A DNA stretch of 64,000 nucleotides, taken from contig NC_087245.1 in assembly GCF_037042905.1 (NCBI RefSeq), positions 7,998,001-8,062,000 on the forward strand. The letters are read 5' to 3'. Both the position numbers and the translations under genes were made by a program. Of the stretch, positions 998 to 31,060 are shown piece by piece; position 1 is the first letter of the stretch, and the number at the start of each line of letters is the position of its first letter. The notes under the pieces are model-generated. The model had not been told where the DNA came from and ran no database searches. It was given only the letters and a program-made list of their open reading frames with translations. Source of the DNA: Lytechinus pictus (lineage: Eukaryota).

Positions 998-1489
998 CTG
1001 CAAAATATTAATGACAAGAAAAATATAACTCGTTTTCCAATTAACACATTTATGTAAAATTTCCTAATATGTAAACTTAATGCCCTAATTCTATTCTCTT
1101 ACAAGCAGTATAATTAAGGTTTATGAGGGATGAAGCATAAGTTCTACATTTATTTTTTGATTTGCAACAGAACAGGAAATGCGATTGAAGTCAGGACGGT
1201 TCACCGGCAACTCGGTTATGCAAAATATTAATGACAAGAGAAATATGATGACTGGCTTCCCATTTAACAAATTTATAAGTAGACTTTCCTAATACGTAAT
1301 GTGAATTCCCATAAGTCCCTAGTATAGTCTCTTACAAGCAGTAATTAAGGTTTATGAAGTATAAAATCTACATCTAGTTTTCGATTTGCAACTGAATAAA
1401 TGATCTACCCTTATCATTATTTTATATCAGCATTCTTTATTGACTGACTAAAAAGAAACTTCAATATCTATTGGTGGCACGTCCCACAA

Positions 1490-1740
1490 GGGTCGTGTGG
1501 TCTAGTGGTAAGAGCATTGGACTCATAATCGAAAGGTTACGAGTTCGAATCCCCACTCTGCCATTGTCTCCACTTTGATAAAAAGGTCCGAGAGTATTAT
1601 CTGTCGTCTCTAAGGCCAGCCACTATGGCTGATTACGTAAAGTGTTTCCTAGGTTATTGGTTATATACCAGTTTGGCGTTTACCAGCAAAAATCTGTCCG
1701 GCCGAGTTCCTACGGGAGTTACTATAACCTACCAAGTTTT
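1490..1740 (+). mobile_element. SINE with tRNA-Met-like head
   Basis: TGGTCTAGTGGTAAGAGCA A box, CTCATAA anticodon-like loop, GAGTTCGAATCC B box; stems imperfect; followed by non-tRNA body. The 3' end is approximate. Confidence 0.55.
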
Positions 1741-1765
1741 AAATGTTATGAAGAAAAATGGATCA

Positions 1766-2839
1766 CAGGGGGGGATCCAGCTTTCGCCAATAGGGGGGGG
1801 GCCGAAAAATATTTTCATCAACATTTTTCTCTATTGGCCGCTATAATCTGTTTTTTTTTCTTTTGGTTTTTCAGGGGGTAGTCCTAACTAAAGACTGAAG
1901 TTTTAGTTTTTATTGTAATAAACAAGATAAGGTATCTCATGTCGACTTAATATAATATGCGACCGCGAAGCGCGAGCTCGAATTCTTTGATATTCTATGT
2001 CCTTAGACCTGAAGATTCTGAACAGTTGTTATATTCATGAACAAAGATAAATATCAAACTAAACAATGCGAGAGCGAAGCGCGAGCCGAAATTTTAATAT
2101 AGTAACGTGAAAAGGAACTCAATTAGGACTGTTTTAGTGATTAATGAAGAGGATACAAGTATCACCAATTAAATAATGAGTGTGCGAAGCGCGAGCTCAA
2201 AATTTTTGATATTCCGACCTGAAAACTGGACAGTCTAACTAAGCACATTTTTATTCAAATAAAGAACAAGCTTTGTCTCAAACAATTAAATGCGAGTGCG
2301 AAGCACGAGCTTAAATTTTTACTGACATAATAAAAGGGCATTTTTAGAAATTTTGGTAAGAATTCAATGGTAAGAAGAAGATAGGTATTTCACAAATCAA
2401 ACAATGCGAGCGTGCAGCTCGAGCTGAAAATTTTCATATATATTAACAATTTGTGTAAATCAAACAAAATAATGAAAGCTTGATGTGCGAGCTAAAATAT
2501 TGTGTGCAAATTGATTTCAGAACTGGATATATTAAGTGCCATTAAATCCTTTTGAATGAGATTCATTACACAGGCAATGCGAGCGCAAAGCGCGAGCGAA
2601 ATTTTTTATATGAATTCTATTTTCCAATTCTTCCCCTCACCTTTTTCTTGTTCCCTTTCGGGTCGGGCCGGCCGATACAAGGCTGTAAATCACACATCAT
2701 GGGTATAATACCTCTTTCTTACTTTTCTTTTTTTTTTAAATCGTTTCTATCAAGTTAAAGAGTACACTTTTTTCTGCAGATTGCCAAAAATATAGGGGGG
2801 AGGCGGGGCCGGCTCGGCCCCCTCCTGGATCCGCGCCTG
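1766..2839 (+). mobile_element. Non-autonomous DNA transposon (CAGGGGCGGATCCAG-type termini) with internal GCGAGCGCGAAGCGCGAGC repeats
   Basis: CAGGGGGGGATCCAG...CTGGATCCGCGCCTG, flanked on both sides by GATCA. Relatives at 32400 and 55938-56873. Confidence 0.75.
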
Positions 2840-2847
2840 GATCATTA

Positions 2848-3655
2848 GCAAAAGGGGTTGGATCAATTTTTCATCAGATTTGATTTTGTTGACCCAGTGT
2901 ATAGATTTTAATAGCTCTATAAGATGATACCAAAGAAAAGTTGAAATTCCCATTAAAAGGTGTATAAAACGTACAAAAACCGTTTTTTTTTCTTAAAAAA
3001 GGGTTGGATCACTTTCAGTTTGTTTGCAAAAGGGGCTATATCTAAGGTATTTTTTTGAAAAAGATATTTAAAAATATGAAGACAGGTAGATTTCTTTTGT
3101 ACCCAATTTTTGTTCACATGGAAGGGTAATATATTATGCTAATTTAGTTTTGCATAAGAATATTGCAATATATGAAAATAAAAAAGATTTATTTTCTTGG
3201 AATATTCTAATGTGGATCGAACCCTTTGCAAACAAACTCTTCCGAAGAGCACATTTGCAAAAGGGTTAGATCCATTTTTCATAAAATTTGATCTCTTTTT
3301 GTTTCAATGTATAAATTTTAGTCGCTCTGATGATACCAGAGAAAAGTTGAAATCCCCATTAAAAAGTAAATAAAACGTATAAAACCCTTTTTGCATAAGA
3401 AAGGTTTGGATCATTTTCAGTTTGTTTGTAAAACGGGCTAGATCTACAAAGGTAATTTTTTGAAAAATATATTAAAGAAAAGTGAAGACAGGTAAATTTC
3501 TTTTACACCCAATTTTATGTTCACATGGTAGGGTAATATATTATGACAATTTAGTTTTGCATAAGAGTATTGCAATATATGAGAATAAAAAAGCTTGATT
3601 TTCTTGGAATGGTCTAAAGTGGATCTAACCTCTTTTGCAAACAAACTCTATTTGT
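2848..3655. repeat. Two-copy ~409 bp tandem duplication
   Basis: GCAAAAGGG(G)TT(G/A)GATC...GATGATACCA(A/G)AGAAAAGTTGAAAT...GAAGACAGGTA...TTGCAAACAAACTCT recurs at 2848 and 3257. Confidence 0.8.
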
Positions 3656-3704
3656 AGGAGATATTTCAATTTGATTGTTGTGACTCGCATGACGAGACAC
3701 TATT

Positions 3705-4104
3705 GGGCGATTCCATGCTAGAAAAATCAGCTATTTTCGCAACATTTTTGCAACCTATTGTCCAAACAAACGAAGAACTTCAATTTATTTTGTGGTAATA
3801 ATAAAGTACTACTGGGTAGACATATGAAAAAATGACAACCAACAAAAATATGTTGTCCATGGATGAATTAGGGGTGAAAATATTGCGTGTCGTACAGGAC
3901 ATTTCTGAGTAACGTACGACACACAACATTTTCGCCCTTAATTCAGCCATAATCAAACATTTTTTTGTTGGTAATCTGTTTTTCACATGACTACTCACTA
4001 TAACTTTATTATTGACCAACAATAATTTTTCATTGCTCAAGCAGTCAGCTAAGAGACTATAAATTGTTGACAAAATGTCCCGTACGACACGTATGGAATC
4101 GCCC
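3705..4104. mobile_element. MITE with 12-bp TIR
   Basis: GGGCGATTCCAT...ATGGAATCGCCC, inside a region with repeated TGTGACTCGCGTGAC motifs (3679, 4271, 4606, 4640). Confidence 0.6.
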
Positions 4105-4746
4105 TACTAAAGATTCCTGGCCCCTCTGTATTTGTCTTTAATTTCCTCAGAAGATACACACCAGATATTGATAAAATTTTCTGGAGAGTATTTCGAAACA
4201 CCGGGAAATATCATCTTTAACGCCTCGGACATGATGGACTTTTGGTTTTGAGTTGATTGCCATTTGAAGATGTGACTCGCGTGACAAGTATCATTCTGGA
4301 CTATAGGTTGAACAAATTATCATGATTTTATACAGTAAGATGGGTAAAATATCATTCAAATAGAACATTTATGGTCACTTACACCCCATCTATTGTTTAA
4401 AACAAATGAATTTTAAAGCCGAGTTCTGATACATCTACTTACATGAAAGCATGTGGGACTACATAATTAATAGTCTCATATGTGTTATTAATAGCATTAA
4501 AAGTTTTTCTGAATAAAAGTAATCATTCACGCCTAAAGAAATGACATTTGCCAAAAAATCCCATTTATTATCCTTGTTTCCAAAAATATTGCTTGTTTTG
4601 TGATATGTGACTCGCGTGACATACCCTTAAAAACCTTAATGTGACCCGCGTGACAGAAGTTTAGGGAGATTTTTCGTAATGTAGGGATTTTCAGTTGGCA
4701 ATCTTCTTTGCTTGTTCGATTTAGTACCTTATATATATCTAAGTAT

Positions 4747-4779
<33 letters not shown>

Positions 4780-5523
4780 AACCCCTCAAAAAAAGTTTGG
4801 AAATCTGAGTTTTGCCATTAATTTCTCCCAACTCCCAATTTTACACAATGCATATTGATATCATTCAAAAGATCATTAAATTCTCTTTAAAATAATACCA
4901 TACTTGTTATGATCATGCCATCACGAAAAGAGCAGGATTCAAAAGTGTTGGATGAGTCTGAATTGAAAAGCTGCAAAACGAGCAGAAACAGTCATGGAGG
5001 GTCAATGAAAAACATTATTCTTTTGTCTGTGTCAAAAGAGACGAAAATTCATTCAAATCAAGCCCCTGCTTCTTCATTTTTGATGTCTTGTTGTGGTTTA
5101 TGTAGTGATGGTTCAGTGAGCTAACATGGTTTGAGCTGTGGTTTGAAATACCCATGCATGTTTGTTATGTGTTTGCTTGTGTGTGCAGAGGTATGATTGA
5201 TTCCATGTTAATGTTGATGTTAAAGGTGCATGAATACAAAATAAACTACTGAGGAACTCACTCATCGCCACGGAAAAAAACATTGACTTTCAGTATTGTG
5301 TCATTTTGCAACTTTTGACTTTTGACCTTGCCCCACATTTCAAGGCGCTGCACCTCCATGTGAACCAAAATCATATCATGTAGGGTATCATTTTAAAGAA
5401 AATTACATGATCTATTTATTGGTATCCATCACACATTAATATTCACTGATACCGGTGAGGGATCATCGAACAAAGTTAGATTTCCAAACTTGTGATCAAT
5501 ATGTGACCAATTTTAATTCTTAC

Positions 5524-5760
5524 GTGTATTCTGTACGTAGAATAAGCATTCAGCCGAGTTGTTATATTCATCGACAGCAAACATTGTTACTGCCGTGTAT
5601 CCAGGAGCGAGAGGTGCACCTTCTGTGACGTCATAAGTTACATTTGGGTAAGGACTAGCATCATAATAGGTATACATATCATTGGTCAATCCATGAAAGG
5701 TGTTTGGTGAATCGTTAGGGAGTGTTACATTGGAACACGTCACAATAGGAGGATCAGTGT
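5524..5760 (-). CDS. HYR exon, A-type (A1)
   Basis: ctttacag|ACACTGAT...AATACAC|gtaag; 237 bp, phase 1-1; DTDPPIVTC...PGYTAVTMFAVDEYNNSAECLFYV fits the HYR pattern D..PP...C...G.T.VT..A.D...N...C.F.V. Confidence 0.88.
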
Positions 5761-5829
5761 CTGTAAAGAAAATGGGAGTAAAACGAATCATGTTAACGTT
5801 ACTTTTTTAATCGATATGTAAGGTAAATC

Positions 5830-6251
5830 ATTAATAATCATTATTTTTACATGATGCGCTTGATGTACGTAGGCGCTTATCAATTTATTATTACCCCTGT
5901 CATCGGATTCAATTAGTAATTCCCGCATATGTACATCCTCTACTCTTTGGGGTTTATTATCATGGAGCGCCACGTGTAAGCCCTGTAATAAAACACCGGT
6001 AACTTCTTATTTTGTTACAAAAACAATCGACAGTTATTTTTTTTTTTCACAAAATCAATCGACGGCGCACGCAATTATGAACAAGCTACAATAAATTTCA
6101 CATCATTGCGGCTATCCACTTAGCCCCTGGGTGGAGAGTGGCAAAGTGTGGATTGATACCTTGCCAAATGACGTTTTATAGGCCGCGGTGGGATTCGAAC
6201 ACACGGACCTATGATTACAAGGCGAGAATCAGTATATACCACGGTTCTTCC
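5830..6251 (-). mobile_element. Degenerate tRNA-derived SINE in each array unit (also ~8300-8712, 10783-11192, 13251-13664, 15737-16149)
   Basis: Minus-strand GGAAGAACCGTGG...GTTCGAATCCCACCGCGG head; aligns by eye to the stand-alone copy at 26731-27082 plus an extra ~80 bp internal segment. Confidence 0.8.
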
Positions 6252-7143
6252 ACTTCTAATTATTAAGAATAACAGTAATTCTAAATCTCCCCTAAACATA
6301 TTTAATTGATTCAAATCGAAACCAAACCATAGTCAATTCATAATTAATTATAAACAAACTAATACAAGTCTGCTAAAAAAATCTTGCGCCAGAGTGAAAT
6401 ACATTCAATTCATCAAGATCTTCTATCAATAAAGATGATTTTTCATGATGAAATTATTCTTTCATCTAAATGAAGCACCTGCCATATGTATATACCGAAA
6501 GGCAGGAGTATATAAGTTTCAGAAATTCGCTTATTTAGAACAATGTCTTAATTAAATCGTTAGCTTAGAGTATACCAGAATACCAGAATTCAGTAAATAA
6601 AGAAACCTCTGTACAATGTTCCTTCTTTCAGCTCAATCCGTACCATATTTATCCCCAGATTTAATGTCATATCAAGCAAATGTGTAGAAATATGAAGATT
6701 AATCTTGAAACAATATGAAAATCTATACCTTTAAAACGTGACACTATGGTGATATATGGATATGGATATATGGTCTGATATATGGATGCAAAGTTGAATC
6801 CTCTTTGCTCAGTGCGTACCAAAAAAAAAATATATATTATGTCTCTCCAGGACAAATAAGAGATCTTTGTTACATTCATTTAAATAAAAATGGTCTGTGA
6901 GATATCTTCCTTAGTATCAGGGAAAATTAAGTAAATAAGTAAGGTTACCCTTTTGTATTAGTTGATAGCTTTTCTATTATTAGACTATGAAAAAAAACAA
7001 AATCAATAATCATGAGATTTCGAATTAAACAAATGTCAAAAAACGTGATTACTGTCTCAGGCACCATTTAGTCAGGATTCAATCTTTACACACACGTGAA
7101 TATAATTATTTATGAAGGTGATGTAACAATAAAATCATATTAC

Positions 7144-7416
7144 CTTCAACAGTATATATTCCTGTACATTTCTTTTCCAATTCATCATCAAAGATTATTG
7201 CTATCACTCCATGTGTTCCTATTGATACACTCCCTCCAACAGGGAATCTTCCTAGAGTAATATTAACAGACACAGCATCTCCGTGATATCGGTAACCATC
7301 AACAGATTTGGTGACATTGTCTGCTCCAAAATCTGGCGTAAAATTGTAAGTCGCTTGATGTGGATCAGTGCGTACAGTGCGATTTAAGTCCGGACAGTTC
7401 ACTGGTAGCTCGGTAA
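7144..7416 (-). CDS. HYR exon, B-type (B2)
   Basis: ttttgcag|TTACC...GAAG|gtaa, 273 bp, phase 1-1, open frame. Confidence 0.87.
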
Positions 7417-7994
7417 CTGCAAAATATTAATGACAAGAAAAATATAACTCGCTTCCCATTTAACACATTTATGTAGACTTTCCTAATGTGTAAACTTAAT
7501 TCCCTTATTCTATTCTCTTACAATCAGTAATTAAGGTTTATGAGGGATGAAGCAAAAGTTCTATATTTAGTTTCGATGTGCAACAAAACAGGAAATGCGA
7601 TTCAAGTCCGGATGGTTCACCGGCAACTCGGTTACGGCAAAATATTAATGACAAGAAAATATGATAACTCGCTTTCCATTTAACATATTTAAAAATAGAC
7701 TTTCCTAATATGTAAACTTATTTCCCTTAAGTCCCTGTCATATTCTCTTACAAGCAGTTTTCCATTCAAAAAATGAAATGCATACCTACTGAAAATGCAT
7801 ACATGGAAGGGGTTCTTCTTGAGACAGTGCACTTTGTGTAAAAGGAAAATTAATCCTCGCGACTAACAATAAAATACCTCGAATATATTTATTTCACCAT
7901 GGAGGAACGAGTAAGCTAGTTGGATAAGGATGTTCATGCAATGTTCATTTCTAAATCAGATTCTAAAAGAGATGTAACCAATGGCACTACCTAC

Positions 7995-8231
7995 GTGTGT
8001 TCTGTACGTAGAATAAGCATTCAGCCGAGTTGTTGTATTCATCGACAGCAAACATCGTTACTGCCGTGTATCCAGGAGCGAGAGGTGCACCTTCTGTGAC
8101 GTCATAAGTTACATTTGGGTAAGGACTAGCATCATAATAGGTATACATATCATTGGTCAATCCATGAAAGGTGTTTGGTGAATCGTTAGGGAGTGTTACG
8201 TTGGAACACGTCACAATAGGAGGATCAGTGT
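7995..8231 (-). CDS. HYR exon, A-type (A2)
   Basis: tttacag|ACACTG...ACAC|gtaggt, 237 bp, phase 1-1. Confidence 0.87.
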
Positions 8232-9623
8232 CTGTAAAGAAAATGGGGATAAAACGAATCATGTTATTGTTACTTTTTTACTCGATATGTAAGGTAAATC
8301 ATTAATAATAATTTGGCATGATGCCCTTGATGTACGTAGGCGCTTATCAATTCATTATTACCCCTGTCATCGGATTCAATTAGTAATTCCCGCATATGCA
8401 CATCCTCTACTCTTTGGGATTTATTATATGGAGCGCCAAGTGTAAGCCCTGTGATAAAACACCTGTAACTTCTTATTTTGTTACAAAAACAATCGACAGT
8501 TATGGTTTTTTTCACAAAATCAATCGACGGCGCACACAATTATGGACAAGCTACAATCAATTTCACACCATTGCGGCTATCCAATTAGCCTGGGTGGAGA
8601 GGGCAAAGTGTGGATTGATGCCTTGCCAAATGACGTTTTATAGGCCGCGGTGGGATTCGAACACACGGACCTATGATTACAAGGCGAGAATCAGTATACA
8701 CCACGGTTCTTTCACTTCTAATTATTAAGAATAACAGTAATTCTAAATCTCCCCTAAACATATTTAATTGATTCAAATCGAAACCAAACCATAGTCAATT
8801 CATAATTAATTATAAACAAACTAATACAAGTCTGCTAAAAAAAATATTGCGCCAGAGTGAAATACATTCAATTCATCAAGATCTTTTATCAATAAAGATG
8901 ATTTTTCATGATGAAATTATTCTTTCATCTAAATGAAGCACCTGCGATATGTATGTACCGAAAGGCAGGAGTATATAAGTTTCAGAAATTCGCTTATTTA
9001 GAACAATATCTTAATTAAATCGTTAGATTAGAGTATACCAGAATACCAGAATTCAGTAAATAAAGAAACCTCTGTACAATATTCCTTCTTTCAGCTCAAT
9101 CCGTACCATATTTATCCCCAGATTTAATGTCATATCAAGCAAATGTGTAGAAATATGAAGATTTATCTTGAAACAATATGAAAATCTATACCTTTAAAAC
9201 GTGACACTGCGGTGATATTTGATCTGTGTCATATATGGATATGGATATATGGTCTGATATATGGATGCAAAGTTGAATCCTCTTTGCTCAGTGCGTACCA
9301 AAAAAAAAATATATATTATGTCTCTCCAGGACAAATAAGAGATCTTTGTTACATTCATTTGAATAAAAATGGTCTGTGAGACATCTTCTTTAGTATAAGG
9401 GAAAATTAAGTAAATAAGTAAGGTTACCCTTTTTTATTAGTTGATAGCTTTTCTATTATTAGACTATGAAAAAAACAAAATCAATAATCATGAGATTTCG
9501 AATTAAACAAATGAAAAAAAAATCGGGATTACTGTCTCCGGCACCATTTAGTCAGGATTCAATCTTTACACACACGTGAATATAATTATTTATGAAGGTG
9601 ATGTAACAATAAAATCATATTAC

Positions 9624-9896
9624 CTTCAACAGTATATATTCCTGTACATTTCTTTTCCAATTCATCATCAAAGATTATTGCTATCACTCCATGTGTTCCT
9701 ATTGATACACTCCCTCCAACAGGGAATCTTCCTAGAGTAATATTAACAGACACAGCATCTCCGTGATATCGGTAACCATCAACAGATTTGGTGACATTGT
9801 CTGCTCCAAAATCTGGCGTAAAATTGTAAGTCGCTTGATGTGGACCAGTGCGTACAGTGCGATTTAAGTCCGGACAGTTCACTGGTAGCTCGGTAA
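9624..9896 (-). CDS. HYR exon, B-type (B3)
   Basis: Same splice signals, 273 bp, open frame. Confidence 0.87.
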
Positions 9897-10477
9897 CTGC
9901 AAAATATTAATGACAAGAAAAATTTGATTAGTCGCTTCCCATTTAACACATTTATGTAGACTTTCCTAATGTGTAAACTTAATTCCCTTATTCTATTCTC
10001 TTACAATCAGTAATTAAGGTTTATGAGGGATGAAGCAAAAGTTCTATATTTAGTTTCGATTTGCAACAAAACAGGAAATGCGATTCAAGTCCGGATGGTT
10101 CACCGGCAACTCGGTTACGGCAAAATATTAATGACAAAAAAATATGATAACTCGCTCTCCATTTAACATATTTATAAGTAGACTTTCCTAATATGCAAAC
10201 TTATTTCCCTTAAGTCCCTATCATATTCTCTTACAAGCAGTTTTCCATTCAAAAAATGAAATGCATACCTACTGAAAATGCATACATGGAAGGGGTTCTT
10301 CTTGAGACAGTGCACTTTGTGTAAAAGGAAAATTAATCCTCGCGACTAACAATAAAAGACCTCGAATATATTTATTTCACCATGGAGGAACGGGTAAGCT
10401 AGTTGGATAAGGATGTTCATGCAATGTTCATTTCTAAATCAGATTCTAAAAGAGATGTAACCAATGGCACTACCTAC

Positions 10478-10714
10478 GTGTATTCTGTACGTAGAATAAG
10501 CATTCAGCCGAGTTGTTATATTCATCGACAGCAAACATTGATACTGCCGTGTATCCAGGAGCGAGAGGTGCACCTTCTGTGACGTCATAAGTTACATTTG
10601 GGTAAGGACTAGCATCATAATAGGTATACATATCATTGGTCAATCCATGAAAGGTGTTTGGTGAATCGTTAGGGAGTGTTACATTGGAACACGTCACAAT
10701 AGGAGGATCAGTGT
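10478..10714 (-). CDS. HYR exon, A-type (A3)
   Basis: Same splice signals, 237 bp, open frame. Confidence 0.87.
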
Positions 10715-12092
10715 CTGTAAAGAAAATGGGAATAAAACGAATCATGTTAACATTACTTTTTTACTCGATATGTAAGGTAAATCATTAATAATAATTTGGC
10801 ATGATGCCCTTGATGTACGTTGGCGCTTATCAATTCATTATTACCCCTGTCATCGGATTCAATTAGTAATTCCTGCATATGCACATCCTCTACTCTTTGG
10901 GATTTATTATATGGAGCGCTAAGTGTAAGCCCTGTGATGTAACTTCTTATTTTGTTACAAAAACAATCGACAGTTATTATTTTTTTTCACAAAATCAAAA
11001 AATCAATCGACGGCGCACACAATTATGGACAAGCTACAATCAATTTCACACCATTGCGGCTATCTTCTTAGCCTGGGTGGAGAGGGCAAATTGTGGATTG
11101 ATGCCTTGCCAAAGGACGTTAGGCTGCGGTGGGATTCGAACACACGGACCTATGATTACAAGGCGAGAATCAGTATACACCACGGTTCTTCCACTTCTAA
11201 TTATTATGAATACCAGTAATTCTAAATCTCCCCTAAACATATTTAATCGATTCCAATCGAAACCAAACCATAGTCAATTGATAATTAATTATAAACAAAC
11301 TAATACAAGTCTGCTAAAAAAAATCTTGCGCCAGAGTGAAATACATTCAATTCATCAAGATCTTCTATCAATAAAGATGATTTTTCATGATGAAATTATT
11401 CTTTCATCTAAATGAAGCACCTGTGATATGTATATACCGAAAGGCAGGAGTATATAAGTTTCAGAAATTCGCTTATTTAGAACAATATCTTAATTAAATC
11501 GTTAGATTAGAGTATACCAGAATACCAGAATTCAGTAAATAAAGAAACCTCTGCACAATCTTCCTTCTTTCAGCTCAATCCGTACCTTATTTATCTCCAG
11601 ATTTAATGTCATATCAAGCAAATGTGTAGAAATATGAAGATTTATCTTGAAACAATATGAAAATCTATACCTTTAAAACGTGACACTATGGTGATATTGG
11701 ATTTGTGTGATATATGGATATGGATATATGGTCTGATATATGGATGCAAAGTTGAATCCTCTTTGCTCAGTGCGTACCAAAAAAAAATATATGTCTCTCC
11801 AGGACAAATAAGAGATCTTTGTTACATTCATTTGAATAAAAAGGGTCTGTGTGACATCTTCCTCAGTATCAGGGAAAATTAAGTAAATAAGTAAGGTTAC
11901 GCTTTTGTATTAGTTGATAGCTTTCCTATTATTAGACTATGAAAAAAAAAATCAATAATCATGAGATTTCGAATTAAAGAAATTAAAAAAAACGTGATTA
12001 CTGTCTTCGGCACTATTTGGTCAGGATTCAATCTTTACACGCACGTGAATATAATTATTTATGAAGGTGATGTAACAATAAAATCATATTAC

Positions 12093-12365
12093 CTTCAACA
12101 GTATATATTCCTGTACATTTCTTTTCCAATTCATCATCAAAGATTATTGCTTTCACTCCATGTGTTCCTATTGATACACTCCCTCCAACAGGGAATCCTC
12201 CTAGAGTAATATTAACAGACACAGCATCTCCGTGATATCGGTAACCATCAACAGATTTGGTGACATTGTCTGCTCCAAAATCTGGCGTAAAATTGTAAGT
12301 CGCTTGATGTGGATCAGTGCGTACAGTGCGATTTAAGTCCGGACAGTTCACTGGTAGCTCGGTAA
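12093..12365 (-). CDS. HYR exon, B-type (B4)
   Basis: Same splice signals, 273 bp, open frame. Confidence 0.87.
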
Positions 12366-12945
12366 CTGCAAAATATTAATGACAAGAAAAATATTATTAG
12401 TCGCTTCCCATTTAACACATTTATGTAGACTTTCCTAATGTGTAAACTTAATTCCCTTATTCGATTATCTTACAATCAGTAATTACGGTTTATGAGGGAT
12501 GAAGCAAAAGTTCTATATTTAGTTTCGATTTGCAACAAAACAGGAAATGCGATTCAAGTCCGGATGGTTCACCGGCAACTCGGTTACTGCAAGATATTAA
12601 TGACAAGAAAATATGATAACTCGCTTTCCATTTAACAAATTTATAAGTAGACTTTCCTGATATGTAAACTTAATTCCCCTAAGTCCCTATTCTGTTATCT
12701 TACAAGCAGTTTTTCATTCCAAAAATGAAATGTATACCTTATGAAAATGCATACATGGAAGGGTTCTTCTTGATACAGTGCACTTTGTGTAAAAGGGAAA
12801 TTAATCCTCGCGACTAACGATAAAAGACCTCGAATATATTTATTTCACCATGGAGGAACGGGTAAGCTAGTTGGATAAGGATGTTCATGCAATGTTCATT
12901 TCTAAATCAGATTCTAAAAGAGATGTAACCAATGGCACTACCTAC

Positions 12946-13182
12946 GTGTATTCTGTACGTAGAATAAGCATTCAGCCGAGTTGTTATATTCATCGACAGC
13001 AAACATTGTTACTGCCGTGTATCCAGGAGCGAGAGGTGCACCTTCTGTGACGTCATAAGTTACATTTGGGTACGGACTAGCATCATAATAGGTATACATA
13101 TCATTGGTCAATCCATGAAAGGTGTTTGGTGAATCGTTAGGGAGTGTTGCGTTGGAACACGTCACAATAGGAGGATCAGTGT
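12946..13182 (-). CDS. HYR exon, A-type (A4)
   Basis: Same splice signals, 237 bp, open frame. Confidence 0.87.
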
Positions 13183-14576
13183 CTGTAAAGAAAATGGGAA
13201 TAAAACGAATCATGTTAACGTTACTTTTTTAATCGATATGTAAGGTAAATCATTAATAATAGTTTGGCATGATGCCCTTGATGTACGTAGGCGCTTATCT
13301 ATTCATTATTACCCCTGTCATCGGATTCAATTAGTAATTCCCGCATATGCACATCCTCTACTCTTTGGGATTTATTATATGGAGCGCCAAGTGTAAGCCC
13401 TGTGATAAAACACCTGTAACTTCTTATTTTGTTACAAAAACAATCGACAGTTATGATATTTTTTCACAAAATCAATCGACGGCACACATAATCATGGACA
13501 AGCTCTAATCAATTTCACATCATTGCGGCTATCCACTTAGCCCCTGGGTGGAGAGTGGCAAAGTGTAGATTGATGCCTTGCCAAAGGACGTTAGGCCGCG
13601 GTGGGATTCGAACACATGGACCTCTGATTACAGGGCGAGAATCAGTATACACCACGGTTCTTCCACTTCTAATTATTAAGAATAACAGTAATTCTAAATC
13701 TCACCTAAACATATTTAATTGAATGAAATCGAAACCAAACCATAGTCAATTGATAATTAATTATCAATTATCAAACTAATACAAGTCTGCTAAAAAAATA
13801 TCGCGCCAGAGTGAAATACATTCAATTCATCAAGATCATCTACTGATCAATAAAGATGATTTTTCACGATGAAATTATTCTTTCATCTAAATGAAGCACC
13901 TGCGATGTGCATATACCGAAAGGCAGGAGTATATAAGTTTTAGAAATTCGCTTATACAATAAAGTCAGCAAAAAAATAGATCAATATGTTAATTAAATTA
14001 TTAGATTAGAGTATACCAGAATTCAGTAAATGAAGAAACCTCTGCACAATCTTCCTTCTTTCAGCTCAATCCGTACCTTATTTATCTCCAGATTTAATGT
14101 CATATCAAGCAAATGTGTAGAAATATGAAGATTTATCTTGAAACAATATGAAAATATATACCTTTAAAACGTGACACTATGGTGATATTGGATTTGTGTG
14201 ATATATGGATATATGGTCTGATATATGGATGCAAAGTTGAATCCTCTTTGCTCAGTGCGTACCAAAAAAAAATATATGTCTCTCCAGGACAAATAAGAGA
14301 TCTTTGTTACATTCATTTGAATAAAAAGGGTCTGCGTGACATCTTCTTCAGTATCAGGGAAAATTAAGTAAATAAGTAAGGTTACCCTTTTGTATTAGTT
14401 GATAGCTTTCCTATTATTAGACTATGAAAAAAAAATCAATAATCATGAGATTTTGAATTAAACAAATAAAAAAAAACGTGATTACTGTCTTCGGCACTAT
14501 TTGGTCAGGATTCAATCTTTACACACACGTGAATATAATTATTTATGAAGGTGATGTAACAATAAAATCATATTAC

Positions 14577-14849
14577 CTTCAACAGTATATATTCCTGTAC
14601 ATTTCTTTTCCAATTCATCATCAAAGATTATTGCTATCACTCCATGTGTTCCTATTGATACACTCCCTCCAACAGGGAATCCTCCTAGAGTAATATTAAC
14701 AGACACAGCATCTCCGTGATATCGGTAACCATCAACAGATTTGGTGACATTGTCTGCTCCAAAATCTGGCGTAAAATTGTAAGTCGCTTGATGTGGATTA
14801 GTGCGTACAGTGCGATTTAAGTCCGGACAGTTCACTGGTAGCTCGGTAA
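14577..14849 (-). CDS. HYR exon, B-type (B5)
   Basis: Same splice signals, 273 bp, open frame. Confidence 0.87.
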
Positions 14850-15429
14850 CTGCAAAATATTAATGACAAGAAAAATATGATTAGTCGCTTCCCATTTAAC
14901 ACATTCATGTAGACTTTCCTAATGTGTAAACTTAATTCCCTTATTCGATTCTCTTACAATCAGTAATTAAGGTTTGTGAGGGATGAAGCAAAAGTTCTAT
15001 ATTTAGTTTCGATGTGCAACAAAACAGGAAATGCGATTCAAGTCCGGATGGTTCACCGGCAACTCGGTTACGGCAAAATATTAATGACAAGAAATATGAT
15101 AACTCGCTTTCCATTTAACAAATTTATAAGTAGACTTTCCTGATATGTAAACTTAATTCCCCTAAGTCCCTATTCTGTTATCTTACAAGCAGTTTTTCAC
15201 TCAAAAAATGAAATGTATACCTAATGAAAATGCATACATGGAAGGGGTTCTTCTTGATACAGTGCACTTTGTGTAAAAGGAAAATTAATCCTCGCGACTA
15301 ACAATAAAAGACCTCGAATATATTTATTTCACCATGGAGGAACGGGTAAGCTAGTTGGATAAGGATGTTCATGCAATGTTCATTTCTAAATCAGATTCTA
15401 AAAGAGATGTAACCAATGGCACTACCTAC

Positions 15430-15666
15430 GTGTGTTCTGTACGTAGAATAAGCATTCAGCCGAGTTGTTATATTCATCGACAGCAAACATTGTTACTGCC
15501 GTGTATCCAGGAGCGAGAGGTGCACCTTCTGTGACGTCATAAGTTACATTTGGGTAAGGACTAGCATCATAATAGGTATACATATCATTGGTCAATCCAT
15601 GAAAGGTGTTTGGTGAATCGTTAGGGAGTGTTGCGTTGGAACACGTCACAATAGGAGGATCAGTGT
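15430..15666 (-). CDS. HYR exon, A-type (A5)
   Basis: Same splice signals, 237 bp, open frame. Confidence 0.87.
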
Positions 15667-17006
15667 CTGTAAAGATAATGGGGATAAAACGAATCATGTT
15701 ATTGTTACTTTTTTACTCGATATGTAAGGTAAATCATTAATAATAATTTGGCATGATGCCCTTGATGTACGTAGGCGCTTATCAATTCATTATTACCCCT
15801 GTCATCGGATTCAATTAGTAATTCCCGCATATGCACATCCTCTACTCTTTGGGATTTATTATATGGAGCGCCAAGTGTAAGCCCTGTGATAAAACACCTG
15901 TAACTTCTTATTTTGTTACAAAAACAATCGACAGTTATGATTTTTTTTCACAAAATCAATCGACGGCGCACATAATTATGGACAAGCTACAATCAATTTT
16001 ACATCATTGCGGCTATCCACTTAGCCCCTGGGTGGAGAGTGGCAAAGTGTGGAATTGACGCCTTGCCAAAGGACGTTAGGCCGTGGTGGGATTCGAACAC
16101 ACGGACTTCTGATTACAAGGCGAGAATCGGAATGCACCACGACTCTTCCATTTCAAACTTTTAAGAATAACAGTTATTCTCAATCTCACCTAAACATATT
16201 AAATTGAATGAAAGTGAAACCAAACCATAGTCAATTGATATTCAATTATAAACAAAGAAATACAAGTCTGCTTGAAAAAATATCTTGCACCAGAAAGAAA
16301 TACATTCAATTCATCAAGATCTATCAATAAAGATGAATTTCATGATGTCATTATTGTTTTATCTAAATGAGGCACCTGCGATGTGTATACATCGAAAGGC
16401 ACGGGTATATCAATTTCAGAAATTCGCTTTTTTCAATAAAGTCAGCAAAAAGTTAGAACAATATCTTCATTAAATCGTTAGGTAAGAGTACACCAGAATT
16501 CAGTAAATAAAGAAACCTCTTTCAGTTCAATCCGTATCATATTTATCTCCATATTCAATGTCATATCAAGAAAATATGTAGAAATATGCAGATTCCATTA
16601 CTTGAAACAATATGCAAATTTAAACCTTTAAAACGTGATACTAATATTGGGTATGTGTCTTTATATGGATGCAAAGTTGAACCCTCTTTCCTCAGTGCGT
16701 AACAAAAAATATGTCTCTCCAGGACAAATAAGAGATTATTCATTTAAATAAAAAGTGTCTGTGAGACATTTTCCTCAGTATCAGAAAAAATTAAGTAAAT
16801 AATTAAGGTTACCCTTTTGTATTAGTTGATAGCTTTTCTATTATTAGAATACGAAAAAACAAATTCAATAATCATGAGATTTCGAATGAAACAAAAAAAT
16901 TGATTACTGTCTTCGGCATCATTTGGTCACGATTCAATCTTTACACACACATGAATATAAAGTTATTAATATTTATGAAGGTGATGTGACAATAAAATCA
17001 TATTAC

Positions 17007-17279
17007 CTTCAACAGTATATATTCCTGTACATTTCTTTTCCAATTCATCATCGAAGATTGTTGCTACCACTTCATGTGTTCCTATTGATACACTCCCTCC
17101 AACAGGATATCCTCCTAGAGTAATATTAACCGACACAGCATCTCCGTGATATCGGTAACCAGAGGAAGATTTGGTGACACTGTCTGCTCCAAAATCAGGC
17201 GTAAAACTGTAGATCGCCTGACCTGGATCAGTGCTTACAGTGCGATTTAAGTCAGGACAGTCCACTGGTAGCTCGGTAA
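17007..17279 (-). CDS. HYR exon, B'-type (B6)
   Basis: ctttcag|TTACC...GAAG|gtaa, 273 bp; TELPVDCPDLNRTVSTDPGQAIYSF... Confidence 0.87.
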
Positions 17280-17684
17280 CTGAAAGAATAACAGAATTAA
17301 GTGCATAATGCTTTTCTGTATCTACCTGTAACATACGTTATGAACATCATATCATTCACATCGATCCTTCACACCGATCACACACCGATCCTCCTTTTGC
17401 ACCTTAGTCAAATTGTTGGTATGTCGTCCCGGAACAAGATAAATGTTGCTTTTTTTTAAGTTATGAAAATAGAAATATTCAAACAAAACTATTATGTTTA
17501 TATATAAAAATGATATACTAAATAAACCTTTTTGCTAGTAAGCTTTACGATCCATAGACAATAATTATTGTATCATTATTAAATTCATGGTTATTATTAA
17601 TATCATCGCTTTTGTTGTGATATGGGCTTTTAATTTATTGTAATGAATGAAAGTATAAAATAAGCTAGGGAGCAGTAAACTTAC

Positions 17685-17951
17685 GTGGATTAAACACATA
17701 GAAAAGGCAAGTGGCAGTATTATTGCAAATATCCGTTGAATACAATGTAACCGGTGTGTATCCTGGAGGGAATAAGTCTCCTTTGTTAGCAATTGTGACA
17801 TTATAGCTAATCCCACTAGGATTAGGATTAGCATCTGTAGTAGTGTATCCATTATTTAGAGTCAATCCATAAAAGGAATTGGAAAAGAAGGGATGAGTCC
17901 TTCCGTTTGAACACGTTACCTCTGGAGGATCGGGGTCGGTCAAACAGTAAT
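17685..17951 (-). CDS. HYR exon, C-type (A-related, 4 Cys) (C1)
   Basis: attttcag|ATTACTGT...AATCCAC|gtaag, 267 bp, phase 1-1; DYCLTDPDPPEVTC...GDLFPPGYTPVTLYSTDICNNTATCLFYV. Confidence 0.87.
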
Positions 17952-18214: not shown

Positions 18215-19144
18215 CGTTTTATGAACAGACTTGCATGTTTTACCTGACAGTTATGAATTGCGCTCCTCTTTCAATCAACATTCATCTATACAGGTTTTAA
18301 CCTTGTCAGAGTTATTCCTTTTTAAACAAAACATTTTTTTCTGAATATATTGGTACACCTATAAGTCAAGTTCAATGTTTTTCACTCATGTAGCTAAAAG
18401 CGACATTATTGATATTGTGGCTAATTTGGATCATAAAAAATCTTCCTGGCTATGGTGATGTTAATAATTTGATTTTGAAAGGCGTAATACATGAAATTTT
18501 CGTTCCCTTGACGAGATATCACTCCTTACTGGTCTGGTCCCAGATAAAAAGAAAATTGCTAAGACCATTGCATTGTATAAAATGGTTAACAAGTTGAGTA
18601 TTAGAAAATATTATCATATCATCATTATATCAATATTATCATGTCTAAAAAATTTAGAAGGTTATTTATAGCAAAACAAGTCATATCCTAAAATTTGAAT
18701 ATTGTTCAAACTTTCTGATTTGATTTAAAGAAAGCATTATACATAACACGCATTATCAAAATTTTGACGATAAAATTTGACCGTTGCTTACATCTAGTCG
18801 GCATTTTTCTGAACTCCTCCATGGCCTTCAAAATCATTAACCATTAATTATATAAATTTTCTCATTTTGGAGTGCGCGGGAAGGCCTTGGAACGATTTAA
18901 AAGCTTCCTTTCTCGTAGCTCAGGCAACCTATATGTCGCTATATGTCATTGCATATTAATAATCATATACAGAAAAAACATTTTGACCGAAATAATTCTT
19001 ACAAAATTTGACAATCGATACCTTTATTGTTCTCATCGGATTTTTATTGTTTAACCTGTGCAATTTGAAGGAAATCATTAGTAATATTTTACTTAGAATT
19101 GAAATTTCATACCCATCTTAATAAAATTATTCGAACATTATTAC

Positions 19145-19417
19145 CTTCAACGGTATATATTCCTGTACATTTCTTTTCCAATTCATCATCAAAGATTATT
19201 GCTATAACTTCACGTGTTCCTATTGATACACTCCCTCCAACAGGATATCCTCCTAGAGTAATATTAACCGACACAGCATCTCCGTGATATCGGTAACCAG
19301 AGGAAGATTTGGTGACACTGTCTGCTCCAAAATCAGGCGTAAAACTGTAGGTCGCCTGACCTGGATCAGTGCTTACAGTGCGATTCAAGTCAGGACAGTC
19401 CACTGGTAGCTCGGTAA
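19145..19417 (-). CDS. HYR exon, B'-type (B7)
   Basis: ctttcag|TTACC...GAAG|gtaa, 273 bp, open frame. Confidence 0.87.
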
Positions 19418-19822
19418 CTGAAAGAATAACAGAATTAAGTGCATAATGCTTTTCTGTATCTACCTGTAACATACGTTATGAACATCATATCATTCACATC
19501 GATCCTTCACACCGATCACACACCGATCCTCCTTTTGCACCTTAGTCAAATTGTTGGTATGTCGTCCCGGAACAAGATAAATGTTGCTTTGTTTTAAGTT
19601 ATGAAAATAGAAATATTCAAACAAAACTATTATGTTTATATATAAAAATGATATACTAAATAAACCTTTTTGCTAGTAAGCTTTACGATCCATAGACAAT
19701 AATTATTGTATCATTATTAAATTCATGGTTATTATTAATATCATCGCTTTTGTTGTGATGTGGGCTTTTACTTTATTGTAATGAATGAAAGTATAAAATA
19801 AGCTAAGGAGCAGTAAACTTAC

Positions 19823-20086
19823 GTGGATTAAACACAGAGAAAAGGCAAGTGGCAGTATTATTGCAAATATCCGTTGAATACAATGTAACCGGTGTGTATC
19901 CTGGAGGGAATAAGTCTCCTTTGTTAGCAATTGTGACATTATAGCTAATCCCACTAGGATTAGGATTAGCATCTGTAGTAGTGTATCCATTATTTAGAGT
20001 CAATCCATAAAAGGAATTGGAAAAGAAGGGATGAGTCCTTCCGTTTGAACACGTTACCACTGGAGGATCGGAGTCGTTAGTACAGT
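19823..20086 (-). CDS. HYR exon, C-type (C2); first HYR exon recognised after the signal-peptide exon
   Basis: tttgtttgcag|ACTGTACT...AATCCAC|gtaag, 264 bp, phase 1-1; DCTNDSDPPVVTC... Confidence 0.87.
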
Positions 20087-23843: not shown

Positions 23844-26699
23844 TAGTCCAGTCATTTTAGCCCAAATTTTTACCAAACTTGGAACAAATTGCAACATATT
23901 TTTTTTCACCACAATGCATTTCTGTGAGGTCCCTATATAAAGGGGTCTGCCGAAGTCACCAACCCCTTTTTGTCTTGCCTCGCCTTTGTTGGTGTGACTA
24001 ACACGCATAAATACATGTGTGCGTATAGCGATAGAAAGGTTTATATTACTTAAATTGATATGTGGGCAAAGGGCCTTTTCTACATATAAAAGCAACTTTT
24101 ATGTTAATGAAATCTCTTGGAAAAGTTAGAGGATGCTTTGCTCTGCATGCTGCATGCAATAACGTTCAAGAACATTAAAGCATAGTCCCACAATAGCCTG
24201 TCGAATGTACCCCCTTATCCGTAGCTTAACTATAAAAACATCGTGCTTTTTGGAGCCCCAAATGTGACAAAGTAGTGTTTTGCTACAGAGAAAAAAAAAC
24301 TTTTATTATCTTGAAGTCACTTGGAGGCAAAATAGTAGGCTTTTCTCTATCAGTACATATAAAGAGGTGATGGCAAAGCAAATCCTAACCCTTAGGGGTC
24401 TGCCGAAGTCACCAACCCCTTTTTGTATTTTGCCCATTTCTTGGAAAATTCGTAATTTTTAGCCCCATTGAGGCAAAAGGCGTTTCCCCTTTGCAGTAAA
24501 CTACTTTTATTGTTTTGTTAGCACTTGGGGATGAAAAAATAGTTTTCCCTCTATCAGCTAAATATAAGGAAGTGCTGACACAGCAAAGCCTATCCCCACG
24601 GGGTTTGCTAAAGTCACTCATCCCTTTTCCATATTTTGCCAATTTTATGGAAAAATCTATAAATCCAGAGGCGTTTCAAACCGCCTCGATCACAAGAATC
24701 CCCGTTAAATTACGAGAACATTTTTAGGCTAAAAAATACCCATTAATTATTCCTACATTCACACCGCCCCGAAACATACCCTTCGGGATAAATTCCTGAA
24801 GTTAGGAGCATGCACAGTATGGTCTAATAAGCAGGCAAGGCGCGAGATTCAAAACCACTAGCCCAGCAGCCACCCACGGCGCCCGCGCCCAACAACACGC
24901 TGGGCTAAAAGTTCCCGTAAATTGCTTTCACATTGCCAAAATACCTGCGACCTTGGAAAAATCCCCGCGAAAGTTCTCGTAATTTTGCCAAGTACCTACT
25001 ATTTAGCGGGTATTTTCTTTTGGGGAAATTACGCGTAGTTTGCTTTCATATTACCAAAATACCTGGTATTTTCTGATCGGGGTAAATTTCCCGATCAGAG
25101 AATACCTGGAACTGACGAACTTCGAGGCGGTCTGAAACCATGAGGCAAACAGATGTTTCTCCTATTATAGTGAAAGCCACTTTTAATGTTTTAAAACCAC
25201 TTGAAAATGAAAGAGTAGCCTTTTCTTCTATCTGCTTCGTACAAAGAAGTGCTGGCGTATCAAATCCTACATCCTTCAGGGGGCTGCCCAAATCACCCTA
25301 CTTTTGCATACTAGTATTTTGCCAATTTCTTGGAAAATTCTTCATTTTGGAGCCCCATTGCGTTTCCTCTTTGCAGTACACCACTTTTATTGTTTTGTAA
25401 CCACTTGGAGATAACAAAATTAGATTTTCCTCTATCAGTTACATAAAGAGGTGCTGGCTCAGCAAACCCTGCCTCTCAGGGGTTTGCCGAAGTCTCCCCA
25501 CCCTTTTTGCATATTTTGTCAATTTATGGAAAGATCTACCAATTCGGAGCCCTCATTATGCAAAAATGTTTTTCTGATATATAGCAAACCACTTTCATTG
25601 TTTCGCAACCACTTGGAGATAAAAAGAGTAGATTTTCCTCTATCAGCTACATATAATGAAGTGCTGGCTCAGCAAAGCCTACCCCCTCAGGGGTTCCCGA
25701 AGCCTCCCCACCCTTTTTGCATATTTTCCCCCTTGTTAATTTATAATTTATGGGAAAAATCTGCCAATTTGGAGCCCCGTTTGAGGCAAAACGTTGTTTC
25801 TGCTTTATAGCAAACCTTTTTCATTGTTTCGTTACCACTTGGAGATAAAAAAGTAGATTTTCCCTTTTCAGCTACACATAAAGAAGTGCTGGCTCAGCAA
25901 AGCCTTCCCCCTCAGGGGTTCCCAAAGTCTCTTTACCCTTTTTGCCCATTTTCCCTCTTTATCAAAACAAAATCGCAAATTTTGTACCCCTCCCACATTC
26001 ATCCAAAAGGCATTTCTGCTATATGGTAAAGTCACTTTTATTATTTGAAACCACTTAAAGATGAATAGGTTTCGTTTATCAGCGCATCGACCCCTTCCCT
26101 CATCAGGGGCTCCAAATTGACAGATTTTCCCATAAATTGGCAAAATACGGAAAATGGGTGAGTGACTTCGGTAGTATAATAGTAGAATAATAGGATGTGG
26201 CAGGTTTAATAGCTACATTTCATTTTTCTCTTGAACTCTGAAATCGAACAGGCAGAAAATATCATTATTTTGGTGTACAACGTCACGTGACTAGCATATG
26301 ACAGTTTCCGTGCCTAGACCCTTTCATGTTAAACAATTAATACAGTCCAAACAGAATCGAATCTATGCATTTAATGTTGATAGTAACAATGTTCTTGTAG
26401 TTTAAATCTTTGCTTAATGATATTTATATGAGGCCAATGTTTATAGTAGTATCGAGTCCGGAATTGATATGATTTTGCAATCGGGTCTGAGTAGTACACT
26501 AGCGTCGTCTGCTACATAAACTAAATGAGCGAATATGACCAAAACTAACCATTATGTTTATGCAAATTAGAACACTTTCCCCTATTCGGATTTTCTGGGA
26601 CTTTTAGTATGGTCTTCTATGGACCTCAAAGAAATGTTCTGCATTGGAATAAATTCTGTTGCAATTTGTTCCAAGTGAAAAGTTAACATGACTGGACTA
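23844..26699. mobile_element. Large non-autonomous TIR element with an internal ~180 bp satellite
   Basis: TAGTCCAGTCAT...ACTTGGAACAAATTGCAACA...GAGGTCC at the left, inverted at 26621-26699; TTC on both flanks; internal CCACTTGGAGAT...CTATCAGCTACATA...GGGGTTTGCCGAAGTC repeats. Confidence 0.7.
24672..25139. mobile_element. MITE nested in the satellite
   Basis: GTTTCAAACCGCCTCGA...TCGAGGCGGTCTGAAAC inverted termini, interrupting a satellite unit. Confidence 0.7.
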
Positions 26700-26730: not shown

Positions 26731-27082
26731 TAATAATAATAATCCGATTTTATATAGCGCTTAATACATCGGAACGAAGTGTCTAAGCGCTTTACAGATT
26801 ATTACCCAGGTCATCGGATTCAGTCAGTTATTCCCACACACAATGTATGCACATCCTCCACTCATTGGGGAGTATTCCAGTCAGTCGCCAGTGAGGCGCA
26901 CACAGTACTGGACAAGCTACAATGACTTTCACATCCTACTGGGTACCCATTTAGCACCTGGATCGAGAGTGACAAAGTGTGGATTAACACATTGCCAAAG
27001 AACGACAAACCGCGGTGGGATTCGAACACACAACCCTCTGTTTACAAGGCGAGAGTCAGAACCACTACACCACGGTTCTTCC
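26731..27082 (-). mobile_element. Full-length tRNA-derived SINE
   Basis: Minus strand: TGGTGTAGTGG A box, GTTCGAATCC B box, CCAGGTGCTAAATGGGTACC core, GTAAAGCGCTTAG...AAGCGCTATATAAA and (ATT)n tail. Confidence 0.85.
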
Positions 27083-30201: not shown

Positions 30202-31060
30202 TGATTTTGACTTGTCAGTTCCGTCCCCAGGTGTTTTGAATTGGATCAATCCTGCGCAGCTCCGGGATCTATCATGAAGTGAAAGATCTGTTAGAGTTGG
30301 TTGAGTTCTGTTTCGAGGCATGTTGGCCTAGATCCTGCAGCTATAATTGCCTTACGACTCAATCCTGCAAAAAGTTGATTTGGACCTGTCTGTTCTGTTT
30401 CCAGGTGTTTTGACCTGGATCAGTCCTGCAGCTCCAGGATTTATCATCACGTCAAAGATCGTCAGAGTTGATTTGGACCGGTCAGGTCTGTTTCAGGCTG
30501 TTGGCCTGGATCCTACAGCTATATATAATTGATCTATCACGACCAAATCCTGCAGAAGTTGATTTGACTTGTCTGTTCTGTTTCAAGGTGTTATGACCTG
30601 GATCAATCAACTTCTTGTAAAAGCTGATTTTGACCTGTCAGTTCTGATTGCACATGTTTTGACTGGGATCCTGCAGCTCCAGGAATTATCATCACGTCAA
30701 AGATCTAGCAAAAGTTGACTTGTACCGGTCAGTTCTGTTTCAGGCGTGTTGGCCTGGATCCTGCAATTCCTATCACGACTTGAAAGTTCTTGCAGAAGTT
30801 GATTTTGACCTGCCAGGTGCCCAGGTCCAATTGCAGGTGTTTTGACTGGGATCCTGCAGCTCCAGGATTTATCATCACGTCAAAGATCTAGCAAGAGTTG
30901 ATTTGGACCGGTCAGTTCTCTTTTAGGCGTGTTGGCCTGGATCCTATCATTACTTGAAAGCTCTTGCAGAAGTTGATTTTGACCTGTCAGTTCTGATTGC
31001 AGGTGTTTTAACTGGGATTCTGCAGCTTCAAGATCTCTCATGACTTAAAATATCTTGCAG
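30202..31060. repeat. ~85-90 bp minisatellite with dimeric higher-order structure
   Basis: About ten copies of GTTGATTT(T/G)GACC(T/G)GTCAGTTCTG...GGATCCTGCAGCT...ATCACG. Confidence 0.85.

Follow-up and report, generated by a model that had tools for sequence, protein, structure and literature searches.

Tandemly repeated in-frame exon pairs in a Lytechinus pictus gene: mosaic sharing of variants and probable exchange between units

In the human LPA gene, the KIV-2 unit measures 5.5 kb and harbors exons of 160 and 182 bp, and its copy number ranges from 1 to more than 40 (PMC4378929). In sea urchins, EBR1 was described as carrying multiple HYR repeats and as showing species specificity (PMC8403831), and EBR1_5 combines a transmembrane segment and a SEA domain with seven HYRs, in which positive selection was reported (PMC5521101). 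The present study concerns a tandem array of exon pairs found in a stretch of 64,000 nt of the sea urchin Lytechinus pictus genome (contig NC_087245.1, positions 7,998,001 to 8,062,000), which is hereafter called the window and whose positions are used as coordinates. By analogy, this array would be a familiar kind of repeat-length gene, closest to LPA KIV-2 and, among sea urchins, to the HYR repeats of EBR1. As in LPA KIV-2, the tandem unit comprises no more and no less than two exons with two introns and contributes a single in-frame block to the protein, the introns are homogenised, and paralogous variants appear to be shared via duplication or gene conversion. In contrast to LPA KIV-2, the L. 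pictus unit is of 2.47 kb and encodes two separate modules of ~80–90 amino acids (170 amino acids together) rather than one kringle; moreover, only five copies are present, known here from the assembly and from gene models, and the product is a predicted sea-urchin membrane glycoprotein.

The explanation favored here, which is considered probable as a whole, is that the in-frame exon-pair array arose by tandem duplication and has been kept alike by repeated exchange between its units. Accordingly, a block with two symmetric phase-1 exons and their introns, in which a short interspersed nuclear element (SINE) was already resident, would have been duplicated in tandem, and the resulting units would have been kept 94–98% alike by unequal crossing-over between misaligned units and by short gene-conversion tracts. 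Such repeated exchange would lead to a mosaic of shared variants and to modules closer within than between species, and the number of units would presumably vary between haplotypes. We infer these mechanisms from the patterns that the units now display.

In the notation used here, U0 to U4 are the repeat units, B and A are their two exons, and B′ is a related HYR exon (Table 1). The original prediction of about five units spaced 2430–2484 bp was borne out, since self-BLAST and repeat families recovered four full units and one partial unit. The exon-A copies begin at 7144, 9624, 12093, 14577 and 17007 (spacing 2480, 2469, 2484 and 2430 bp), the exon-B copies begin at 5524, 7995, 10478, 12946 and 15430 (spacing 2471, 2483, 2468 and 2484 bp), and whole-unit identity in the unit alignment is 94.2–97.2%. 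Older related copies were detected by self-BLAST at 689–1342, 16893–17290 and 19139–19428. The period lies beyond the range of Tandem Repeats Finder, whose longest period was 500. When the whole unit was searched against the genome (812 Mb, 368 contigs), flanking and SINE copies alone were listed, and intron 1 and module A gave cleaner queries. Intron 1 of the unit occurs genome-wide only in this array, in four copies and one partial copy, and searches with intron 1 and module A revealed no second copy or haplotig copy of the locus across the 368 contigs.

Along the gene, the exons are ordered B6′ A6 B5′ A5, then B4 A4 B3 A3 B2 A2 B1 A1 B0 and, after a 4.5-kb intron, A(-1). Exon B has 237 nt and exon A 273 nt, and both are of phase 1-1, in that the first two bases and the last base of each belong to split codons, so that the gain or loss of one unit (B plus A, 510 nt) shifts the protein by exactly 170 amino acids and keeps the frame. 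The step of 170 amino acids that had been predicted is therefore exact. The frames are open and canonical AG/GT sites are present in all 14 exons (five B, seven A and two B′); in U2, for instance, exon B (10714–10478) is delimited on the minus strand by the acceptor ...ttacag/AC and the donor C/gtaggt, and exon A (9896–9624) by ...ttgcag/TT and G/gtaata. The RefSeq protein XP_063951643.1 (L. pictus LOC129254729, partial, 1236 amino acids) is identical to the predicted chain of two B′A and five BA units, down to the residues that had been predicted at the junctions (..TVE-D-TDPP.. and ..QNT-L-TELP..), which indicates that the exon model is right. By this identity, the locus can be assigned to LOC129254729, a gene of the minus strand.

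The transcript data comprised 23 runs of Logan contigs, which are assembled sequences rather than reads and whose word depth is not copy number. It was verified that contigs from three runs match the array introns without mismatch across 557–648 nt. RNA-like contigs display the joints 5760/7144, with intron 2 removed, and 7416/7995, with intron 1 removed, with CT..AC on the plus strand. They also display joints that go back, from 7416 to 5524 and from 8231 to 7144, as expected of serial B-A-B-A exons placed on only part of an array. The array exons are transcribed and spliced in series, as evidenced by the splice joints and back-joints in three runs and by the RefSeq model with all 14 exons. 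Additionally, one RNA contig, from run X4, agrees exactly with B4 at the three positions (8035, 8056 and 8198) that tell it apart from B1. Since exact B0 and B4 exons are both found in contigs, at least two unit-specific exon variants are present in independent data. RNA contigs that join a B0-type or B4-type exon to an A1-type exon were dropped as evidence, considering that more than 31 nt separate the variants and that the contigs stem from de Bruijn assembly.

These data bear on whether the array is an assembly artefact, with copy number collapsed or expanded or with haplotypes joined in tandem. Tandem repeats of 2.5 kb at 94–98% identity are indeed a difficult substrate for assembly, the locus has two RefSeq models in mutual conflict, as discussed below, and the pairing of B4-type with A1-type exons in RNA contigs is absent from the assembly. 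However, this odd pairing is explicable as a de Bruijn path chimera because of the same distance between variants, and the exact B0-type and B4-type exons come from independent runs. In fact, the units have many substitutions, indels and position-specific flanks, unlike identical graph loops, and two haplotypes cannot yield five copies, in a window without Ns and a genome with no second locus in 368 contigs. An artefact is thus considered very unlikely.

The original prediction also claimed that variants are shared among units in mosaic fashion, and this claim holds. The diagnostic 17-mer that it quoted was found solely at 13957 and 16434, as stated. In a comparison of the four full units, informative sites support the split 12/34 (25 sites), 14/23 (9 sites) or 13/24 (2 sites), and they are arranged in blocks: 12/34 prevails in exon A and intron 1, 14/23 near the exon B acceptor, 12/34 again in the SINE region and 14/23 again in the distal intron. 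When all five units are considered, 26 informative sites fall into nine partitions, and 175 of the 325 site pairs are incompatible. Incompatibility is lower between neighboring sites than in all permutations (0 of 5000 as low), i.e., the conflicting sites are spatially clustered. The closest relatives of a unit change accordingly from block to block: U1/U2 and U3/U4 pair most closely across exon A plus intron 1; over the 108 nt of 10715–10822, U1 and U4, which are not neighbors, differ by 0.9% and adjacent units by 4.6–5.6%; and at the end of the distal intron (11601–11994) the closest pairs are U0/U1 (2.1%) and U2/U3 (1.6%). Part of this block switching can be read as a register shift, pointing to a duplication breakpoint near the end of the SINE, whereas the 14/23 block cannot be explained in this way. 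The Hudson–Kaplan statistic Rm, which amounts to 12, was discarded as a discriminator, since single-tree simulations already give ~7.

A simple recent stepwise duplication without later exchange, in which the conflicting patterns would be due to recurrent mutation at hypermutable sites, has to be weighed against these observations. Once the register shift is allowed for, a single tree, ((1,2),(3,4)), accommodates the majority of the informative sites, and single-tree simulations with rate heterogeneity do generate conflict on their own, with a mean of 63 incompatible pairs besides the Rm value mentioned above. However, the 175 incompatible pairs were reached in only 3 of 300 no-recombination single-tree simulations, their clustering was never matched by permutation, and U1 and U4 are nearly identical over 108 nt in which adjacent units differ by ~5%. 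On a larger scale, the A exons of B′A and BA units are ~91% identical, while their partners B and B′ share just 46–49%, and modules cluster by species in two lineages of the same architecture. Stepwise duplication alone is consequently regarded as decidedly unlikely, and the exchange between units that had been proposed is supported by the blockwise switches of nearest neighbor, by the clustering test and by the species-wise grouping of modules.

This grouping emerged from a comparison with Strongylocentrotus purpuratus, in which two loci, LOC105439738 and LOC105439979 (XP_030829885.1 and XP_030829896.1), display the same B′A + (BA)n arrangement with near-identical internal units, their modules being 64–74% identical to those of the window. 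S. purpuratus differs from L. pictus in having two loci instead of one and one B′A unit instead of two. In maximum-likelihood trees, the seven A modules of L. pictus form one clade (99/96) and the 12 of S. purpuratus another (93/90); likewise, the five B modules of L. pictus (100/99) and the 10 of S. purpuratus (99/97) form a clade each. The A modules from B′A and BA units cluster by species, not by position, which points to concerted evolution or to parallel expansion. No L. variegatus protein model was found among those of 680–2163 amino acids, shorter and longer models being outside that search.

The gene models also bear on the stability of the unit number. XP_030829885.1 harbors one B′A and five BA units followed by HYR, A-like, SEA, EGF and transmembrane segments, the truncated S. 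purpuratus model P0001 likewise has one B′A and five BA, and an older model of LOC105439979 has one B′A and six BA. Within L. pictus, the earlier RefSeq model XP_054749220.1 of the same locus has three B′A and three BA units versus the current two B′A and five BA. When its third B′ was searched in the present genome, identity nowhere exceeded 67%, so that XP_054749220.1 must have been built on different DNA. The comparison of the two RefSeq models (2+5 versus 3+3) suggests that the two L. pictus sequences differ in unit number; being the sole within-species evidence, it hints at copy-number variation among L. pictus haplotypes, which is plausible but unproven. The opposite proposal is that of an old, fixed-length array homogenised by gene conversion alone, with a stable and non-polymorphic number of BA units. 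It would agree with the five BA units shared by S. purpuratus LOC105439738 and the window, and with a unit type that predates a species split, as indicated by contigs of a relative that carry the young-type intron 1 segment at ~90% identity. However, the other models vary, with six BA in the older LOC105439979 model and three BA plus three B′A in the earlier L. pictus model, and five near-identical direct repeats of 2.5 kb would offer a ready substrate for unequal exchange. A fixed length is thus deemed unlikely.

Some points weigh against the favored explanation of tandem duplication with repeated exchange. Recurrent mutation could explain part of the mosaic, given that the null of 63 incompatible pairs was fitted to the data, and an independent recent expansion in each lineage would also result in species-wise clustering. 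The RefSeq models may differ by assembly or gene-model error, and XP_054749220.1 includes a read-through segment. Finally, the presumed link of A(-1) to the HYR, SEA and transmembrane exons described below rests on phase and on homology to XP_030829885.1.

Divergence among units differs from part to part, amounting to 0.4–1.1% in exon A, 0.4–2.1% in exon B, 2.1–5.0% in intron 1, 3.2–7.5% in the SINE and 1.6–6.5% in distal intron 2 of U0–U3, versus 9–12% between the distal intron 2 of U4 and the rest. The introns had been described as almost as similar as the exons. They are in fact very similar (1–6%), but they are 2–5 times more diverged than the exons (0.4–2.1%). The same old tRNA-like SINE lies in intron 2 of every unit and, because its copies are 3–7.5% apart, its insertion is older than the duplications of the unit. 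As expected from the first reading of the sequence, it is a real interspersed repeat, with more than 3000 first-look candidate matches genome-wide at ~81% identity and, in each unit, a single tRNA box-B-like motif on the minus strand (6189, 8651, 11130, 13602 and 16087). The search of Rfam gave no significant family for it, and ARAGORN no intact tRNA.

The array had further been called very young. Although the units are near-identical, this youth is only relative, as the array is embedded in layers of older copies. The rise in U4 divergence starts at the end of the SINE, with a run of 123/4 sites from about U2 position 11172; the A5 and A6 exons are ~9% from the young A exons, and the intron flanking A(-1) (998–1342) is ~15% from young intron 1. 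A second young duplication was detected upstream of the array in units 5 and 6, whose B′-intron-A blocks (17001–17938 and 19139–20076) are 98.4% identical over 938 bp, i.e., closer in sequence than the units of the main array, while the DNA upstream of their two B′ acceptors differs. Moreover, Logan contigs of the relative mentioned above match exon A together with the young-specific part of intron 1 at ~90% identity, so that the BA unit type predates that species split, though the copies here differ by just 2–5%. In these contigs, exon-like word depth is 105–265 versus ~22 for the flanks, which is a hint only, as word depth is not copy number.

The two exons also differ in how they vary. In exon A, none of ~65 synonymous sites is variable, as compared with 46 of 685 flank sites (binomial P = 0.011, Fisher P = 0.026), and all four differences change the protein. 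Two of them fall in one codon, whose residue is D, G, D and N across the four young copies (sites 9845–9846, 7365–7366, 12314–12315 and 14798–14799); this codon may specify a hypervariable surface residue, although the numbers are small. In exon B, the proportion of synonymous differences (pS) is 3.8–7.5% in nine of 10 pairs (0 for B0–B2), similar to the introns, and that of nonsynonymous differences (pN) is at most 1.1%. Purifying selection appears to act on exon B, and exon A appears to have been homogenised more recently, again with small numbers.

As regards the encoded modules, the unit can be modeled as one HYR-type module, by a marginal match, plus one unclassified beta-sandwich module. 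Exon B scores 19–20 bits against Pfam HYR (PF02494) when extended along its open reading frame, below the cut-off of 21.7, and the exact exon gives no match. B′ passes the cut-off at 26.7–29.5 bits, and B is 46–49% identical to B′. Module A has no Pfam match, and hhalign of A versus B gave a probability of 0.6%. The original prediction counted the units as a number of HYRs, which agrees with the HYR type of B through its identity to the passing B′ but not with its score below cut-off, nor with module A, which lacks a Pfam or profile match. The AlphaFold model of module A, built on 16 relatives, is a beta-sandwich with a predicted local distance difference test score (pLDDT) of 90.3, and Foldseek returned weak Ig-like, PKD, cadherin and Rib matches (best PDB match E = 0.04). 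Module A carries a conserved cysteine pair, C7 and C83, of HYR-like spacing. In a phmmer search of 1.84 billion representative proteins with module A, 29 matches were obtained, and all the named ones that were looked up are from sea urchins.

Downstream of the array, exons were placed by tblastn with S. purpuratus XP_030829885.1, negative positions denoting those below the window start. HYR, A-like, SEA and transmembrane exons were located 13–27 kb beyond A(-1) (contig positions 7970838–7984609), and the last of them encodes a hydrophobic segment, LVGIIVGTTTSALFLIIVTISLVMIAV, with basic residues after it. If these exons belong to the same gene, its product would be a type I membrane glycoprotein with the alternating B′, B and A modules in its extracellular part. 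XP_063951643.1, which terminates by read-through of the A(-1) donor, is then probably a split or truncated model. The gene and its S. purpuratus relatives would share the HYR-SEA-transmembrane architecture described for EBR1_5, a likeness that is a lead only. In contrast to these EBR1-type proteins, neither CUB nor TSP1 repeats occur in the examined part of the gene, and one half of the modules, those of type A, cannot be recognised as HYRs. It is conceivable, but highly improbable in our judgment, that the locus encodes a rapidly evolving EBR1_5-like recognition receptor of the HYR-SEA-transmembrane type, with unit number and the D/G/N residue of module A under diversifying selection and with length alleles aiding gamete or self/non-self recognition.

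The locus provides a small, clean case of concerted evolution within one gene, in which the five two-exon units are marked from within by an old SINE. If the unit number is polymorphic, L. pictus, which can be bred in the laboratory, would allow rates of unequal exchange and gene conversion to be determined directly, and the locus could serve to test for an influence of the length of an HYR-type surface protein on adhesion or recognition. Caution is also called for, since neither the gene models of the locus nor its short-read genotypes are reliable, as illustrated by RefSeq models that disagree and by a current one that stops at a read-through.

Table 1. Coordinates of the array, its exons and related features (window positions; negative values lie below the window start).
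Feature	Position	Strand	Remarks
Young tandem array	5501-16897	minus	period ~2.47 kb (2468-2484 bp); repeat finding and self-BLAST
Partial unit U0	5501-7034	minus	self-BLAST and repeat families
Full unit U1	7035-9514	minus	unit alignment
Full unit U2	9515-11994	minus	unit alignment
Full unit U3	11985-14467	minus	unit alignment
Full unit U4	14468-16897	minus	unit alignment
Exon B6′	19823-20086	minus	264 nt; Pfam HYR 29.5 bits
Exon A6	19145-19417	minus	module A copy
Exon B5′	17685-17951	minus	267 nt, phase 1-1; Pfam HYR 28.1 bits, above cut-off
Exon A5	17007-17279	minus	~9% from A1-A4
Exon B4	15430-15666	minus	HYR-like; splice sites intact; exact B4 variant states in RNA contig of run X4
Exon A4	14577-14849	minus	module A; splice sites; in XP_063951643.1
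Exon B3	12946-13182	minus	splice sites; in XP_063951643.1
Exon A3	12093-12365	minus	splice sites; in XP_063951643.1
Exon B2	10478-10714	minus	splice sites read directly; in XP_063951643.1
Exon A2	9624-9896	minus	splice sites read directly; AlphaFold model of its module
Exon B1	7995-8231	minus	joint 7416/7995 in RNA-like contig
Exon A1	7144-7416	minus	joint 5760/7144 in runs X1 and X2
Exon B0, last B exon	5524-5760	minus	237/237 bases matched by X1 and X2 contigs; splices over the 4.5-kb intron to A(-1)
Exon A(-1), older module A copy	725-997	minus	4.8-5.1% from A1-A4
tRNA-like SINE copy, U2 intron 2	10823-11204	minus	equivalents ~5869-6250, 8340-8721, 13291-13672, 15775-16156
U4 distal intron 2, older array edge	16125-17006	minus	9-12% from the four other copies
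Old ~165-bp internal duplication, intron 1	10079-10241 vs 9858-10011	minus	shared by all units and the A(-1) intron (959-1109 / 1180-1392)
Long intron, B0 to A(-1)	998-5523	minus	homology to the 581-nt young intron 1 limited to the two ends (23 and 345 nt)
HYR exon	-13391..-13648		Pfam HYR 27.2 bits; phase-1 acceptor fits the A(-1) donor
A-like exon	-19494..-19817		tblastn
SEA pieces	-20364..-20495, -22997..-23170		Pfam SEA 27.4 bits (cut-off 26.4)
Transmembrane/tail exon	-26965..-27162		hydrophobic stretch, then basic residues

Some minor features were also observed in the introns of the gene. The internal duplication of intron 1 reproduces the acceptor region of exon A together with the initial ~35 nt of that exon, and its upstream copy is a dead decoy acceptor because it has no AG (gccg for gcag). 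The long intron between B0 and A(-1) harbors two elements. One, a 1.07-kb interspersed repeat at 1766–2839, was inserted fairly recently, as many copies elsewhere share as much as 95% identity with it; the other, a foldback element at ~3705–4104, matches its own opposite strand. A further copy of the tRNA-like SINE of the array lies at 26895–27059, with a box-B-like motif at 27016–27027 (minus strand), and is 78% identical to the U3 copy.

Elsewhere in the window, and judged from translation only, open reading frames resembling a Tc1/mariner-type transposase were noticed at 27879–28857 (plus strand), as were others resembling the endonuclease and reverse transcriptase of a long interspersed nuclear element at 36611–39351 (minus strand). 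Four short tandem arrays occur outside the gene, at 25521–25959, 27437–27849, 30206–30608 and 58655–59233, with periods of 156–311 bp and 79–89% matches.

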